From assembly GCF_902652985.1 (NCBI RefSeq), contig NC_047015.1, positions 44,764,001 to 44,828,000 on the forward strand: a stretch of 64,000 nucleotides of DNA, given 5' to 3'. The position numbers were made by a program, and so were the translations under genes. The notes under the pieces were generated by a model. The model had not been told where the DNA came from, ran no database searches, and saw only the letters and a list, made by a program, of their open reading frames with translations. Source of the DNA: Pecten maximus. Its lineage: Eukaryota. Positions within the stretch are counted from its first letter, which is position 1, and each line of letters opens with the position of its first letter. Below, in pieces: positions 19,084 to 52,800 of this stretch.

Positions 19084-19239
19084 TATATAAATCTATTTAA
19101 AACATGTCTGTTGTTGTTGTTGATGTGTAGACTGATATACGTGTACTGTATGTCTATTATTTATCTTCAAATAACATAGGAACAAAAATGAGGAAGAAAG
19201 ACATTTTTGTGAATGACCTGTCCTGGACTGCGATCTACA

Positions 19240-20390
19240 GCTTGCACGATTGAGAAATATCCATGACTTGCCATATTGACAAATATTCCTGTCTTGTCAG
19301 CTTGAGAAATAATCCATGACTGCTGACCAGCTTGAGTAATATTCCTGATTTGCCAGATTGAATGATATCCAGGATTTGCCATATAGAGAAATATCATTGA
19401 CTTGCCAGATTGAGAGATATCCATGATTTGCAAGACTGAGAAATAATCTATGACTTGCCAGATTGAGATATCCATTATATGCCAGATTGGGAGATATTCC
19501 TGACTTGCCAGATTGGGAGATATTCCTGACTTGCCAGATTGAGAGATATTCCTGACTTGCCAGATTGAGATATATTCCTGACTTGCCAGATTGCGAGATA
19601 TCCTTGACTTGCCAGATTGAGATATATTCATGATTTGCCAGATTGGGAGATATTCCTGATTTGCCAGATTGGAGATATTCCTGACTTGCCAGATTGAGAG
19701 ATATCCTTGACTTGCCAGATTGAGAGATATCCTTGACTTGCCAGATTGAGAGATATTCCTGATTTGCCAGATTGGGAGATATTCCTGATTTGCCAGATTG
19801 GAGATATTCCTGACTTGCCATATTGACAAACATCATTGATTTGCCAGATTGAGAGTTATCATTGACTTGCCAGATTGAGAAATATCCTTGACTTGGCAGA
19901 TTGAGAGATACCCTTGACTTGCCAGATTGAGAGATATCCTTGACTTGCCAGATTGTGAGATATTCCTGATTTGCCAGATTGAAAGATATCATTGACTTGC
20001 CAGATTGGGAGATATTCCTGATTTGCCAGATTGAAAGATATTCCTGATTTGCCAGATTGAGAGATATCATTGACTTGCCAAACTGAGAGAAATTCCTGAC
20101 TTGCCAGATTGAGAGATATCCTCGACTTGCCAGATTGAGAGATATCCATTACTTGCCAGATTGGGAGATATTCCTGTTTTGCCAGACTGAGAGATATCCT
20201 TGACTTGCCTGATTGAGAGATATCCTCGACTTGCCAGATTGAGAGATATTCCTGATTTGCCAGATTGGAGATTTTCCTGACTTGCCAGATTGAGAGATAT
20301 CCTTGACTTGCCAGATTGAGAGATATCCTTGACTTGCAAGATTGAAAGAAATCCATTATTTGCCAGATTAATAGATATCCATGACATGAT
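19240..20390. repeat. 26-bp degenerate minisatellite, ~44 copies
   Basis: tgacttgccagattgagagatattcc repeats; source of four overlapping spurious - strand ORFs. Confidence 0.95.
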
Positions 20391-21099
20391 TTTGGGTGAA
20401 GAAATGTCATCTAAAGTGAATATTGTCATTCTGCATGTCAACTGTCAGTTGGACAATTTGGTAAAACTAATCAAAGATCCTTATGAAAGCTATCCTGGAA
20501 ATAGTTAATCCATGCAATATAAAACTTGTCCGGGTCTGCAAGAAGCCCGAGTTTTCTCTGGCCCTGACACCATGTCCGGTGTGGGAGGCCAATTCCAGAT
20601 TTGGTGTTAGGGCTAAAGGAAACTCAAAGGGCTAGGCTGCAAGATTTTAAAAACCTTGTTTAATGAATGGACGTTCGGGGGAACGGATAACTAAATACCA
20701 ATACTTTATATACATGTCCCTTGAGTGATTAGGTATAAATCAGAAAACACTTAAATATAGAATACTGCTTTCTATGTTATAGGGAAACTTGATAAATAGG
20801 TCACGATGGACCTACCCTGTAGCACACCTTAGTCAGCGCATGGCTAAAGGGGAACAACTCTTACATTATTAATTGCTGAAAGAATTGTAATCTAACATAG
20901 GCAATCATAATTAAAATAACGGAATTTACAGGATTAAATTAATGACAGGCAATGCTAATATTCGATAGAGTAACTTACCTGTTAGTAATTTTTAAATTGT
21001 ATAATTCAACTGCAAATCGACCCATCAAGCTTAACATTCACATGGATTTGACAGACTGCATAGTATATACAGAGACTGTATAGTCCATCGTATTTTGTT

Positions 21100-21242
21100 A
21101 CCATGGGATATGCACGCGCACAACTCAATCACCAAAATGCACAAAATTGCGCAGGACATGCGCATCTATTACCCCAGGTTTCGCGGGCGTCTGACGTATG
21201 TAAGCCGGAGACCAGACTGTCGTGTTGTTGTATTCCAACTAG
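21100..21242 (+). promoter_or_regulatory. CpG-rich promoter and non-coding first exon of the H3 variant gene
   Basis: Local CpG enrichment, NRF1-like tgcgcaggacatgcgca and tgacgt. Strong donor AG|GTAAGT at 21242/21243 pairs with acceptor cgcag| at 21708, 18 nt before the ATG. Confidence 0.55.
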
Positions 21243-21726
21243 GTAAGTCGAAGTACCTCACCATCAGATTTAAGACTTTGTGAAAACATTTTGCGTGAAT
21301 ACCAATGTCTGGTTGTTTATGTTAATAAATTTGATGTGTTAGATTAGACAGACCATTTGTGAATACTTTCTCGGTATATTTTAAGTGGTTCGACTAAAAT
21401 GTAACTACAGATGCAAGTTTGTCATTAAAGACAGCAGCTATTGTAAACTTAAGCAATTGATCTTTTTTTTTCAAATAGGCGATATTACCAAATGAGATTC
21501 AATAGTAAAAAGACTCTCAGAAGTTAGTTTACGGGGGGAAATAAAATAATAATTGAAAAATATTCCAGCGTAGACTACAAAGAAATTGGATCAGTATAAC
21601 AATGTTTTTGTTATATTAAATACAGTCGGATATCTGCTGTACTGTTTATGAGAATAAACAATTGTCATTGTCATTTGTCATTGTATAATTTTGTTGTGTG
21701 ACTCGCAGAGTAAACCATTATTTGAT

Positions 21727-24700
21727 ATGGGGAGATCAAAGCAAACTGCCCGGAAATCTACCACAGGAGGAATAGTTTATCGGTCCATGATGCTGAATTC
21801 TCGAAAAACAATTTGCGACGAGGCATCTTTGAAGAAACCTCACCGCTTCCGACCAGGAACTGTAGCTTTGAGAGAAATTCGTATGTACCAGAAAACCACT
21901 GAGCTCCTCATTCGGAAGCTTCCTTTCCAAAGACTGGTCCGGGAGATAGCATTGAAAATCTCGAAGTTCAACTACAAGTTTAAGGTGGCAGCGCTGGCCT
22001 CCTTACAGGTTAGTGGTAATGTTTAAATACGCAAAAAAAAAAAAAAAAAAAACCACCAACAAGCAAAAAAAAAAAAAAAAAACAACCAAAAACCAAAAAC
22101 CAAAAAAAACCAACAACAACAACCTATAAACCTTAATTCTAATTCGACAAATACCGTCCTTTCAGGCAAGTGACGACTTTATTTTAAACATACAATGTGA
22201 TCCGAAGACAAGCGTGCAAGTTTTCCATTAACATGATCCCATCGGCTAACTTAATGACAAGACATTATATAGGTCTACTGATCCATTATGTACGCCGATA
22301 AATATCCACCTATATCATCAATTTAGGAGCGAAACGCAAACCAGACGCCACTTCTTAGCTGGCCATCGCCGCTTTAGTTTTGTTTAGACTGACTGAGGGT
22401 TTCGATATCCTGACATAGCCATTGTGTTTCGTTCATTGTCGTGCGTACGATACGTCCGCTTCTCGTGCGCTTCCCGTGCGCCGTTCGTAAATTTTTCTGT
22501 GCTTTTGCTCAAAATTCCTATAAATGACTCCGAGATGGTCCTCACAAAATGAGGTTATTTTCCGGGTCGGTCCGAAATCAAAGAAGGTCGTCATGGAAAC
22601 CGTCTTGATAAAACATTTTAAACTTCTTCAATGAGACTAGTGCCAATGAACTTTAAATTGGTATAGATGCTAAAGAAAGGAAGCAGACAAAATGTTATTT
22701 ATCTCTCATAGACCTGAGAATTTGTAACTGTATATATATTTGGACTTGCCCTATATAGCTCCTTTTCGGACGTTTTAGTGAAATACACCCCTCGGTGTTC
22801 ATAATAGAGAAAAGAGGAAAGTTCTCCATGACGAAAAAGATCGACCACCACCTTCGTGTCACGATTGGAAAAAAAAATCCGGTAAGCATACAAAATACAT
22901 GTATGCTAATATGATCGCTGAAAAAAAAATCTACAACATATATATATAAATGTTTTTTTCTTTTCAAAACATTACAAAGTTATGTATTATGTCATCTAAA
23001 AATTACGTCATATCGGCGATATGGGAAATCGAGACTAAAAAATACATTGGGGAATCGTGGATTTCGCTACCACTTTTGTTACAAAAAAGGAGAGTTATCC
23101 CCCCTTGTACTAACCACTATACGGGTATCAATGAAACATTGCACGGTAACTCCCGTAATTGTTGTAGGTCATTTGTATGTTCAGACATAACTGGGTATCT
23201 TTTACATATATAAAGCTATCTCTAAATGTAAGTAAAATGTTCATCAGTTGAGAAGTGACAAAAGAAGACCATATATATTTTGTACTAACGTTTTCAATGT
23301 ATGAACTCTTCAGGCGCATAGTGAGCGAATACATTACAGTGAACGTATTATCTATTCAATGGATTCTATTTGTGAACTATATAATGTTATATGTGTTCCT
23401 GCCTTATTTGGTTCCTTGATTGTAAACTAAAATTATTGTATTTTGTAGTACGATAGTATTCATAGTCTTGAGACCATTAGGTGGATCATGACAGTTGTGC
23501 ATCCCATGATTACGCCCGCATAGATATTCAATATCATCAAATATAATAACAGAATCCTAAAAGAGTATATTATTATATTTATGCCAACTAGTTGATTTCA
23601 ATAAATAATCAGTAATTGGTAAAAAAAACGTTAGTATGACAATTTGAGAAAAGTTGACTAGCCGACGAATAAGTCTACACGGGTTAGCCACACGCTGACC
23701 TATGTCTGGTTAACTTGCAGGATTTTTTTGTGTGTAATGTGAAACTTAAAAATTCGGAGACCTTTTCTGAAATTATTTTTTTTGTGAAACAGTTATATCA
23801 TTGTATTGTTGTGTCGTGCAAAGGCTTTTTCTTGTAAAAAGTGAAGAAGCTCAATTGAGACAGTTTATTTGGTTTTACATGAATATAAATAGCCGTTTTT
23901 ATCATGAAAATTATCAATATATATATTGATCATTTGAACAAAAACAAGCATGGTACGACATAGACACCTAATACAATCATATTATAACACACAAAGAAAA
24001 AAAAAAAAAAAAAGTTCTCTCATTCTATAGTTTCTGATTATATACCAATTATAAACTAGGTCATCTAACTCAAATAATTTTATATCGAATTATCTGTTTT
24101 TAATGTTTCTGTAACTATCCCTTAACAAGGATGTCGTATCAAAACATTAGATGAGGGGTTCATCATTGATTACAAACGGTTTGGTTATTCCTCAACTAGT
24201 GTACCGAAGCACCTTGTTTAAGGCCCCCACAATTATCAGGTGATGGAATGATCGAATATACGTCCGTGACCCACGTCCGTCCTTATACAATGCTGTAAAT
24301 AATAAAATAGCGCAAACGAAGGGAGGTAACTCTGGTATACTGGTGTGTCCGTCGTATGACCGAACTCGTTCTCAATTTGAAAAAATAGGATGATGATAAT
24401 CGCAGAATATGTTTAAACATGAAAACAATGTGACAGTTATATGATAGGATCATCGATAACGTCTTCAAACCTGGTGGCCATGATTGTAGGTGTCGCGTTT
24501 ACTAAATACAGTATTAATTACATGAAACTATATCTCACTTACCATTTCAGGTGATTAGAAGTTGTATTACAGTTAAAAATTGAACGTTTATTATGTGTTG
24601 ATATTGCGTCCCTTTGGTATTATACAGGAAGCGTGTGAGGCATTCCTTGTCGGCCTGTTTGAGGACACCAACCTTTGCGCCATCCACGCCAAGAGAGTCA

Positions 24701-24750
24701 CCATTATGCCCAGGGATATCAAGCTAGCACGGCGTATCCGAGGAGACTAG
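21727..24750 (+). CDS. Divergent intron-containing histone H3 variant, 134 aa (exons 21727-22008, 24628-24750)
   Basis: [15 protein letters not shown]...[40 protein letters not shown]...ASLQ|[40 protein letters not shown]. Phase-0 GT-AG intron at LQ|EA and an intact ORF. No histone stem-loop is seen; AATAAA at 25427. Confidence 0.93.
22352..22700 (+). mobile_element. 5' fragment of a Helentron-associated (HINE-like) element in the H3 intron
   Basis: Starts ttcttagctggcc, has cgtgcg/cgtccg microrepeats, then one core unit (gagatggtcct...ttattttccgggtcggtccgaaatc) shared with 25625-26335. Confidence 0.5.
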
Positions 24751-25426
24751 CTACCAAACGACGTTTTTAAGGCTTTATCCAAATGATATTAGTGTTGTAT
24801 ATTCATTTTATTTGTGTTATAAACTTTAAGCTGAAATGTTTTGACAAGTAATTCCATTGGAATGAAAGATGTTGGCGGTTACCTTGGCGAATGTTTAATT
24901 ATAAGATGATTGGTTTCTGTGTGTTTAACTTTGTATTTTTCGTTTTGATTTAGTTTTTTTTGTTGTTGTTGTTGTTTTGTTTGTTTGTTAAAAAGTGTTA
25001 TTGAATCCTTCTGAAACTACATAACATCATTGTGAAATTTCATTTAGTACAGTGTACTTGACGCATTATCATTGGCATTAACGCTTTGGTTTTCACAGTT
25101 CTAATATCAGAAATATCAAAATGTGTACATATGTGTCTGGTCAAAATGTTGGGATAAATTCTCTTGTGTTGCTTTTCATGATATACAGAGGTCAAAGGGA
25201 AATTATACTAAAGGCCCATCAAGACATATTAAAATTCCAAAGTTACTGATGTGCTGTGAAATAGATTTAGACCTTCCTGGTACAATTAAAAAACATTGTG
25301 TGCTTTGTTTTAAAAAGTCATTTTGCTGAAAAATACGATTGCGGTGTTTCCTTGCTTATTCTTTCGGGAAGAAGATCGTTTTTAATGTTATGGTACATCT
25401 CCGACATATTTCAGAATACCAATACC

Positions 25427-49873: not shown

Positions 49874-52800
49874 ATGTTGTGTCGAAGAAACGTTGAACGT
49901 TTGAAAATGATGTTCCATCGCTGGCCATCATACAGTTTGCGATCATGGCCACGTTCAATACGAAAGTTATTGTCTATAGGGGTATTTATAGTAATAATCT
50001 TGGTTATAATTCTGTCTTATCAATTAAAGATCATCGGAAGTAGTCGTCGAAAAGTGAACCCACCTCAGCCATCCATTACTTGTCGATTTGATCATTCTCA
50101 TAAATCATTAGTCAAGCCCAAGAACCATAACTCTCGTGATAGTAGACATGTATCTAAACGTGTGTTAGTACTTGTGGAATCTCCGTACACCAGTCTCGCA
50201 AAGCATATCATTACTGTGTTAGAGGCAGCTAGGATCGAATATAAAATTGAAAACACAGGCAGAAACCTGCCAACATTGACACACTTTGACAAAAGTAAAT
50301 TTGGTGTGATCATTTTAGAAAACTTAGAGGCATATGTGAATATGGACAACTGGAATAGACAACTTCTCGACAAATATTGTCGCGATTACAAAGTCGGCAT
50401 GATTATATTTGTTCATTCTGTAGATGAGTATGGAATAGATAGAGAAAAAGTGCCTGGGTTTCCTTTATTATTGAGGTACAATATGGCTTTAAAAGACTAT
50501 ACACTGAATTTATTTAGTGACATTTGGAGAATAACGCGTCCTGGAGAGATTTGGGAGGGAACTCTTCAACAAGACGATTGGACTGTCTTTGAATTCAATC
50601 ACTCGACGTATGAACCTTTGGCGTATGCGAAAGCAGCACCCCCACCTTTCCTGGATGCCGGATACCAGGTGGACAACAGGACACTGGTCAGTGTGTTACA
50701 GGACCGAGGCACATTTGATGGTATACAGAAAGTGTTCTTTGGTAATGGACTGGACTTCTGGTTACACATTCCGGTCTTACTGGATGTACTTTCCTATCTG
50801 TCTCATGGTAAACTTAGTCTTCCGTTGGAACGGTTTCATCCAGATTGACGTCGATGATATCTTTGTCGGGATTACTGGTACCAGAATGACACCTGTTGAT
50901 GTAGAGGTAAGACAGCTTTCTTTACTGAAGTCAAACATAAGAAAATGTACGTTAATAAGTTTACTAATCATTTGGTATTTTGTAAAGCAGTTTCTTGTAA
51001 TTGTATGATGTGGCCATCAAATACAGATTTTTTGTTGATTTAATTGATCATAAATACACATGCATTAAAACACCTAAAAGGGTACTGATTATGCTTACCG
51101 GGGTGTATATATATACTAAGCGGGCTCATTTGAGGACAACATGGTTTGAAACTTTAACACTAGGGGAGGGAGCTTATTTGAGGGTACATATATCAATATA
51201 TATGATATCAAACTTCAACACTGGGGGAGGGGGCTTATTTGAGGATAAATACAGTATGAAACTTTAACACTAGGGGAGGGGGCTTATTTGAGGATAAATA
51301 CAGTATGAAACTTTAACACTAGGGGAGGGGGCTTATTTGGGGATAAATACAGTATGAAACTTTGACACTAGGGGAGGGGGCTTATTTGAGGATAAATACA
51401 GTATGAAACTTTAACACTAGGGGAGGGGGCTTATTTGAGGATAAATACAGTATGAAACTTTGACACTAGGGGAGAGGGCTTATTTGAGGATAAATACAGT
51501 ATGAAACTTTGACACTAGGGGAGGGGGCTTATTTGAGGATAAATACAGTATGAAACTTTAACACTAGGGGAGGGGGCTTATTTGAGGATAAATACAGTAT
51601 GAAACTTTAACACTAGGGGAGGGGGCTTATTTGGGGATAATTACAGTATGAAACTTTAACACTAGGGGAGGGGGCTTATTTGGGGATAATTACAGTGTGA
51701 AACTTTAACACTAGGGGAAGGGGCTTATTTGGGGATAAATACAGTGTGAAACTTTGACACTAGCTAGGGGAGAGGGCTTATTTAAGGATAAATACAGTAT
51801 GAAACTTTGACACTAGGGGAGGGGGCTTATTTGAGGATAAATACAGTATGAAACTTTAACACTAGGGGAGGGGGCTTATTTGAGGATAAATACAGTATGG
51901 GGGGGGGGAGGGAGAATTAATTTAGGATAAGGGTAAGTATAAACTTTGAAGTTTTGTCTCGCCTGCAATGAAGTTGCGAAGCAAGACCATGGTGTTACTT
52001 TTCCGACAGCAGGGGCATCATCGCTTCACTTGTAAGTTTAGCATTTAGATTTGTTGCCCAAACTTTAAACCAAACTTGGTATATAGTTAGATCACATAGT
52101 TGACATCTCAACACAACCTTCATTTGCAGAATATCATCCAGAATTCATGGTCCAGTAATTCTGGAATTTAGCCAGGGGTGCTGGGAATCTGGACTTTTAA
52201 AGTTTTGTGTTTAGGTGATCAGTTTCTCAAAAGTATCAATGTTATTTCAACCAAACCTGGAATGTATTTGTATTTAATTGTACATATCAACACACCCTAC
52301 AGTTTACATGAATTTTGTTTTTTTTGCTCTAATTTTTGGGTTAAAATCTTTAGATTTTGAGAAATTGGTATAAAATCTTCATTGCTTTCCATTTAGCCAA
52401 ACTGGAATAATGAATTCTATCATATATATCAGATGTATTTTCCTGATCACTTTGTGTGATTTTGGAGGTCTAGTGACAAATTTAGGTGAATTTTGAGAAA
52501 AGTAATTTTGCAATACATGATTTGTTTATTTTTATTTTTTTTTGCAATTTATCAATATTTTTTTTACACATGTCTTGATATATATAATTTTTTTGTGAAT
52601 TTTGGAGTTTGCTTAAAATTTTCTCTATTGACAATGCGGGACAGATGAGACATATACATGTACTTACTAGTCATAATCATCTCCTGAAGCTAGCTATAGG
52701 TTTCCAAAATTTCTACTGTTTAAAATCTTCAAGGGCTGTTCTCGTTTTGGTTTTATTTGTGCCGATACCTCCAGATACGTGGTACGGTGGACATGATATT

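Follow-up and report, generated by a model that had tools for sequence, protein, structure and literature searches.

A probable scallop-specific histone H3 variant derived from H3.3 in Pecten maximus

Besides the universal set, which consists of canonical H3, of H3.3 and of centromeric H3 (CenH3), several lineages carry replication-independent H3 variants of their own, among them mammalian H3t/H3.4 and H3.5, primate H3.X/H3.Y, and H3.10/MGH3 and H3.15 of Arabidopsis. These are young or clade-restricted duplicates of H3.3 or H3 in which the modification sites of the tail have been altered, and they are often restricted to the germline or to a particular stage. To our knowledge, animal additions to the universal set are rare, and the known ones are mostly mammalian. 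Here we describe an H3 gene of the scallop Pecten maximus that was read within a 64-kb stretch of chromosome C1 (G000:C1:44764001-44828000), which is referred to below as the window and whose positions are used unless another contig is named. We consider it likely that this is a functional, single-copy, replication-independent H3 gene limited to the Pectinidae, that it arose as an ancient duplicate of the spliced H3.3 gene, and that a phase of fast change on the stem of its lineage was followed by purifying selection. The gene is real and uncharacterised; as a lineage-specific H3 variant it joins a class that is already known.

A 2025 survey of mollusc core histones included P. maximus, M. yessoensis and C. 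farreri (PMC12210499), and its text gives H3.3, with four differences from H3, and CENP-A as the only H3 variants. Similarly, a paper on bivalve chromatin methods deals with H3 and H3.3 only for scallops (PMC5550673). In the literature that we searched, no paper citing any of the four orthologue accessions given below was found. Current annotations hide the gene under the names 'H3.3-like', 'H3.2' or 'uncharacterized'.

The features of the gene, all on the forward strand of the window, are as follows.

21200-21242 (+), putative non-coding first exon, with a donor CTAG/GTAAGT after 21242 by sequence consensus; the 5' end is nominal
21243-21708 (+), putative intron in the 5' untranslated region (5'UTR), GTAAGT ... 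TCGCAG, from sequence only
21709-21726 (+), 5'UTR portion preceding the ATG in the first coding exon
21727-22008 (+), coding exon 1, 94 codons, ending CAG/GTTAGT; translation, core-histone profile PF00125 at 1.7e-13, and match to the database protein
22009-24627 (+), phase-0 intron of 2619 bp, GTTAGT ... TATACAG, 34% G+C, read from the letters
24628-24750 (+), coding exon 2, 40 codons plus TAG, directly after TATACAG; translation, PF00125 at 3.5e-17, and match to the database protein
24751-25450 (+), presumed 3'UTR, with candidate poly(A) signals ATTAAA at 25228 and 25285 and AATAAA at 25427 from a hexamer scan

Read together, the 2 coding exons give an intact open reading frame (ORF) of 134 amino acids that is identical, residue for residue, to the database record P0001, which is RefSeq XP_033750463.1, 'histone H3.3-like [Pecten maximus]'. 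The ATG at 21727 stands in the context GAT ATG G, with G at both -3 and +4. Coding exon 1 specifies the N-terminal tail, alpha-N, alpha-1, a loop 1 longer than usual and the first part of alpha-2, as far as Q93 (H3 numbering is used throughout); coding exon 2 specifies the remainder of alpha-2, loop 2 and alpha-3, and leaves the C-terminus 2 residues short of that of H3. Both exons match PF00125, as expected of a protein with the fold of the H3 family. The predicted coding junction, 22008/24628, has only the RefSeq model and a matching break in the H3.3 paralogue to speak for it, and the junction at 21242/21709 in the 5'UTR, which is of good consensus (CTAG/GTAAGT and TCGCAG/AG), is a putative one.

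We searched the P. maximus assembly (918,306,378 bases in 3,983 contigs) exon by exon, the 2 exons being used separately, and reserved the database record for full-length comparisons. The variant was found to be single-copy, the next best exon match being 60% identical. The histone 3' stem-loop, RF00032, was not found in an Rfam scan of positions 20000 to 27000 at E<=1, and the poly(A)-like hexamers lie 480-680 nt beyond the stop codon. By these observations, a first-pass annotation made from the letters of the window was correct in describing a solitary, spliced gene that has an intact 134-residue ORF and lacks the stem-loop.

Several sequence features around the exons were also observed. Just upstream of the putative first exon, an E2F-like TTTCGCGGG (21179-21187, +) and a CRE-like TGACGT (21192-21197, +) could be picked out by eye. 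An A-rich/CCAA low-complexity run, which includes 22076-22119, occupies positions 22020-22130 (+) at the start of the coding intron. A scan for sigma-70 promoters and terminators, a type of scan that does not apply to an animal gene, gave no more than chance.

The remaining H3 genes of this genome provide the setting in which the variant can be classified. Canonical H3 is present as many identical intronless copies, in repeats of ~5.2 kb that also hold H4, H2A and H2B; S87, V89 and M90 are characteristic of the canonical protein. The variant, being spliced and solitary and lacking these residues, is not of this type. The exon search revealed only one standard H3.3 gene in the assembly, which lies at C1:44515596-44516720 (-). 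This places it 269 kb from the variant, and it has S31 and the residues AAIG at 87-90. The H3.3 gene is interrupted by a 723-bp intron at the phase-0 boundary Q93/E94, which is the identical site to that of the variant's intron. Because the site and the phase of the intron are shared with the H3.3 gene, and because A87 and A88 are kept, the origin of the variant is traced to H3.3, as the first-pass annotation had proposed. It might be a transformed second H3.3 copy. The variant is not H3.3 in the strict sense, since it lacks S31 and its 87-90 patch is A-A-L-(A/S) rather than AAIG. As a gene, it is of the replication-independent type, with the intron at the H3.3 site, a solitary locus and no RF00032.

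A CenH3-like gene is found on C2 (G000:C2:19046925-19049115, +; L018 positions 781-877, 1493-1608, 2048-2125 and 2846-2971). It has 4 exons and encodes 138 amino acids, with a basic N-terminal tail unrelated to that of H3, with S68, W84 and A107, and with a loop 1 that is 2 residues longer than in H3; one of its introns lies one codon past the H3.3 intron site. Finally, there are 2 decayed copies of canonical H3, one at G000:C9:6306448-6306744 (-), which has an in-frame TAG and a frameshift, and the other at G000:C1948:9863-10340 (+), which is 5'-truncated and has its first ~16 codons replaced. They illustrate the form that decaying H3 duplicates take in the P. maximus genome.

Orthologues were sought by a word-indexed search of 5.8 billion proteins. 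Intact proteins were recovered from 3 further scallop genera: Mizuhopecten yessoensis (XP_021350490.1 / OWF51874.1, 134 aa), Ylistrum balloti (XP_060063348.1, 134 aa, named 'uncharacterized') and Argopecten irradians (XP_069123940.1, 136 aa). The overall identity of the orthologues is 82-87%. Mizuhopecten has 2 XP records with identical sequence, which suggest 2 transcript models. When the distinctive loop-1 segment alone was used as query, the same 4 scallop proteins were returned. A profile built from the 4 scored them at 269-286 bits, against ~210 bits for the best other single-domain H3 among the matches listed, a gap of ~60 bits; the proteins that ranked above the other single-domain H3s were fused two-domain mis-annotations. 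Among the annotated proteins listed as matches to this profile, which included H3.3 of oysters, clams and gastropods, no family member was found outside the Pectinidae. Thus the variant appears to be lineage-specific, as the first-pass annotation had supposed, with 4 scallop genera as its range. Among representatives clustered at 50% identity, it falls within the general H3 cluster, and there, too, the top matches are fused mis-annotations.

The pattern of change among the 4 orthologues is highly uneven. In 79 of the 138 alignment columns all 4 are identical to H3.3, and a further 12 columns are derived and again identical in all 4: A15V, Y41F, D77K, F78I, D81N, L82Y, Q85K, S86V, I89L, Y99F, K122R and the loss of the last residue (A135). 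All 4 also share a one-residue insertion, S or T, before K79 in loop 1, and have changes of one class at positions 76 (L/M), 80 (F/I), 83 (K/M), 90 (A/S) and 125 (K/R). The columns that vary among the orthologues number 47, and 24 of these are in the tail, so that invariant and variable columns stand at 15:24 in the tail versus 76:23 in the core (Fisher p=4e-5). Pairwise identity follows the same division, with 79-97% in the core and 30-55% in the mid-tail, positions 14-35. Every substitution listed in the first-pass annotation is present in P. maximus; that list had, however, passed over the largest changed block, residues 76-91, together with S96C and Y99F.

The first-pass annotation had also read the tail and its associated residues as a rewired modification code, and this reading holds in part. 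Loss of K14, K18 and K23 is common to all 4 species (with S, T, T or R in place of K18), and so are the invariant block Q5-G13, which contains K9/S10, the invariant pair K36/K37, an acidic residue at position 31 (D/D/E/D), Y41F, K122R and a basic residue at 125. The H3-type N-terminus (R2 ... QTARKSTGG) and the alpha-N sequence KKPHR(Y/F) are likewise invariant, except for Y41F and for H39R in Argopecten. Other parts of the supposed code did not hold across the genera: K4 is R in Argopecten, the equivalent of K27 is E in Mizuhopecten, the tail cysteine and R53M are each found in 2 of the 4 species, and A1G in 3 (as is C96, which was outside the original list).

In the phylogeny, a check proposed in the first-pass annotation, the maximum-likelihood (ML) tree placed the 4 scallop proteins in a clade with 100/100 support, whose stem measures 0.64 substitutions per site against 0-0.27 for the tips. 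This clade is situated inside the H3/H3.3 group and is far from the CenH3-like gene of C2, the branch of which measures 1.25-1.39. One protein, P0018, encoded on a Logan assembly contig of 2,372 b, was observed to join the scallop clade at 87/96 support. It is a 136-aa H3 with K14T, Q76L, D31, M35 and a loop 1 of normal length, and could be either a case of convergence or a form that is intermediate and comes from a bivalve related to the scallops.

A comparison of the variant with its H3.3 paralogue shows saturation at synonymous sites: the NG86 estimate of synonymous divergence (dS) is undefined, and 65-74% of the codons for the same amino acid differ. Nonsynonymous divergence (dN) in the core is 0.08-0.24. 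In a crude neutral simulation limited to point substitutions, the ORF stayed open in 0.15-1.5% of runs (fractions of 0.0015-0.0145) at the divergence that matches mid-tail identity, and the same simulation predicts a whole-protein identity of 37-53%. Taken together, these results fit, so far as sequences can tell, a duplication of old date after which the stem changed in a burst and purifying selection then set in. A search of the literature found no usable divergence dates for the Pectinidae.

The alternative that survives best is that the gene is a redundant extra copy of H3.3, serving as a general replacement H3, and that relaxed constraint has let its tail and loop 1 drift without the gain of a special role. 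We regard this as unlikely, although it accords with the origin from H3.3, with the retention of most H4- and H3-contact residues among the 79 columns shared with H3.3, with the mid-tail variability described above, with the lack of conservation at several of the supposed code residues, and with the presence of a single standard H3.3 gene in the genome. H3.3 is essentially invariant across animals, and drift would not be expected to give 11 identical derived core states in 4 genera and then stasis. Moreover, the changes strike residues that give H3.3 its identity, namely 89 and 90 (87 and 88 stay A) and S31, as well as loop 1, and K14, K18 and K23 are lost in every species.

A second alternative is that the protein is a paralogue of CenH3, or another kinetochore-associated H3, whose loop 1 is recognised in the manner of CENP-A's. 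Duplicates of CenH3 are known in other lineages. Loop 1 of the variant is longer than that of H3 by one residue in all 4 species, and nowhere has the fold been rebuilt more than in loop 1 with the start of alpha-2, which forms part of the CENP-A targeting region. This trait apart, the resemblance fails. In CenH3 proteins Q68, F84 (usually by W) and T107 are replaced; in the variant Q68 and F84 are invariant, and T107 is present in 3 of the 4 species, with V in Ylistrum. The tail can be aligned with that of H3, residues 2-13 and 36-38 being conserved and K9/S10 retained, and alpha-2 is canonical past residue 92. The core is highly conserved among genera, unlike that of the fast-evolving CenH3; identity is 70% to H3.3 versus 55% to the C2 gene, and it is the C2 gene that has S68, W84, A107, the unrelated tail and a loop 1 longer by 2 residues. 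We therefore rejected the variant as a CenH3, and hold any centromeric role of this kind to be very improbable. Judged by the defining residues of each type, the protein is neither canonical H3, H3.3 nor CenH3, as had originally been claimed.

That the gene is a decaying duplicate or unexpressed pseudogene whose ORF is open by chance, an alternative which the first-pass annotation had named and with which the recording of the protein from genome annotations only would agree, is scarcely credible, because the ORFs are intact in 4 genera, constraint is partitioned by structure, synonymous sites are saturated at low core dN and few neutral simulations leave the ORF open; the genuine H3 pseudogenes of this genome, moreover, carry stops and truncation.

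We return, then, to a functional, replication-independent variant under purifying selection, and consider how it might work. Residues 76-91 of H3 include the exposed face of the nucleosome disc around K79, a site of contact with DNA near superhelix location (SHL) 2.5, and the 87-90 patch, which lets DAXX and HIRA/UBN1 distinguish H3.3 from H3.1. Of the other positions concerned, Y41 is found where DNA enters the nucleosome and K122 and Q125 are found at the dyad, and K14, K18, K23 and K122 rank among the main targets of acetylation. In the 4 scallop proteins these positions are now more basic or can no longer be modified. In the mechanism that we propose, the protein would form dimers with H4 and enter nucleosomes outside S phase, such deposition being suggested by the introns, the lack of a stem-loop and the position outside the histone clusters. 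Changes in loop 1 and at the start of alpha-2 (76-91) would create a distinct docking surface on the nucleosome and would change or redirect the choice of chaperone. Y41F, K122R, Q125K/R, D77K and D81N, which remove modifiable or acidic side chains, would tighten or lock histone-DNA contacts, and the mid-tail would offer no acetylatable K14, K18 or K23, with the K9/S10 module and K36/K37 remaining in place. The predicted outcome is a packaging-type nucleosome that would not be opened by the usual acetylations and would still be open to K9 and K36 marks.

The first step of this mechanism was modelled. When the fold of the variant (residues 38-134) was paired with P. maximus H4 (L037:3428-3736 (-), residues 20-103), the interface score ipSAE was 0.85 versus 0.00 for the best control, a mark that is attained by 51 of 78 solved complexes and by 2 of 108 mismatched pairs, and that speaks to likeness of interface, not to measured binding. 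The pairing runs share at least 92% of their contacts, the confidence measure pLDDT of the partner is at least 85, and the usual loop-1/loop-2 contacts are present. As a prediction, the model shows an H4 interface that is preserved in the variant. An AlphaFold2 monomer built from a 7-row alignment was unusable, its mean pLDDT being 44.

Several points weigh against the functional interpretation and should be set out together. The H4 result just described may reflect memory of solved H3-H4 structures. Several of the residues assigned to a modification code differ among species (K4R, K27E and the cysteines), and part of the tail may be under relaxed constraint. The effects ascribed to loop 1, to the dyad and to the chaperone patch are inferred from general knowledge of the nucleosome. 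Each of the 4 proteins is known from one genomic contig and from no Logan assembly, which we take as a weak hint of low or narrow expression; 6-12% of the sequence words of the locus occur in each of 4 sequencing runs, and none of these runs is on record as RNA.

As to where such a nucleosome might be used, the analogy with other lineage-specific H3 variants tentatively points to the germline or the early embryo, a role that is plausible and, in our estimate, less likely than not. More doubtful is a further idea, that this non-centromeric H3 has adopted the strategy of CenH3, its conserved, long, aromatic and basic loop 1 and the altered 85-91 patch recruiting a chaperone and a surface reader of its own, and so maintaining a heritable, acetylation-resistant K9/K36 compartment, for example in gametes or early embryos. 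If that were true, scallops would possess an additional layer of epigenetic inheritance specific to them, one kept up in the 4 genera that carry the gene.

The significance of the variant lies in its joining 3 changes in one protein: loss of the main acetylation sites of the tail, non-modifiable residues at the DNA entry and the dyad, and an insertion in loop 1 outside the centromeric lineage. It is, in effect, an experiment of nature that shows where H3 tolerates rebuilding with its predicted H4 pairing kept, and it offers a way into the germline or developmental chromatin of bivalves that are of commercial importance.

Two neighbouring features of the window may be recorded here. Just upstream of the H3 variant, positions 19167-20441 (-) contain 4 overlapping ORFs of 124-257 aa in different frames, which have only sub-threshold Pfam matches (PH_31, DUF7675) and may constitute an intronless gene disrupted by frameshifts, or else a repeat element. 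The NDST neighbour named in the first-pass annotation was confirmed, in that an exon at 49874-50848 (+) encodes the N-terminal domain of heparan sulfate N-deacetylase (HSNSD_N, 1e-73).

Of the systems with which the variant can be compared, the H3.3 paralogue is the closest. The two genes are both spliced at the Q93/E94 phase-0 boundary and lie on the same chromosome outside the histone clusters, with no stem-loop found near the variant, and the proteins share A87/A88 and 70.5% identity. The variant differs in having D or E at 31, I89L, G90A/S and a rebuilt loop 1 with one additional residue, in its rewritten mid-tail (14-35) without K14, K18 and K23, in Y41F, Y99F, K122R and Q125K/R, and in a C-terminus that is shorter by 1 or 2 residues. 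With the CenH3 candidate on C2 it has in common a longer loop 1, a divergence focused on that loop and on the beginning of alpha-2, and an intron whose site differs by no more than one codon; it departs from that protein in keeping Q68, F84 and an H3-type N-terminus, in the size of the loop-1 extension (1 versus 2 residues), in its slow core, and in an identity to it of 55%.

A more distant parallel is found in the mollusc Aplysia californica, where a protein recorded as 'histone H3.3' (P0224, XP_005092703.1) is H3.3-like, has its mid-tail rewritten from about residue 15 to 35, and has C96. Its loop 1 is of canonical length, its patch is AAVG, K14 is kept, and it falls outside the scallop clade in the tree; by sequence it is probably an independent event, and mid-tail-divergent H3.3-like genes may recur in molluscs under the H3.3 name. 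The mammalian, primate and Arabidopsis variants with which we began show no sequence relationship to the scallop protein beyond membership in the H3 family, and we know of none among them that combines the loss of 3 tail acetyl-lysines with an insertion in loop 1.

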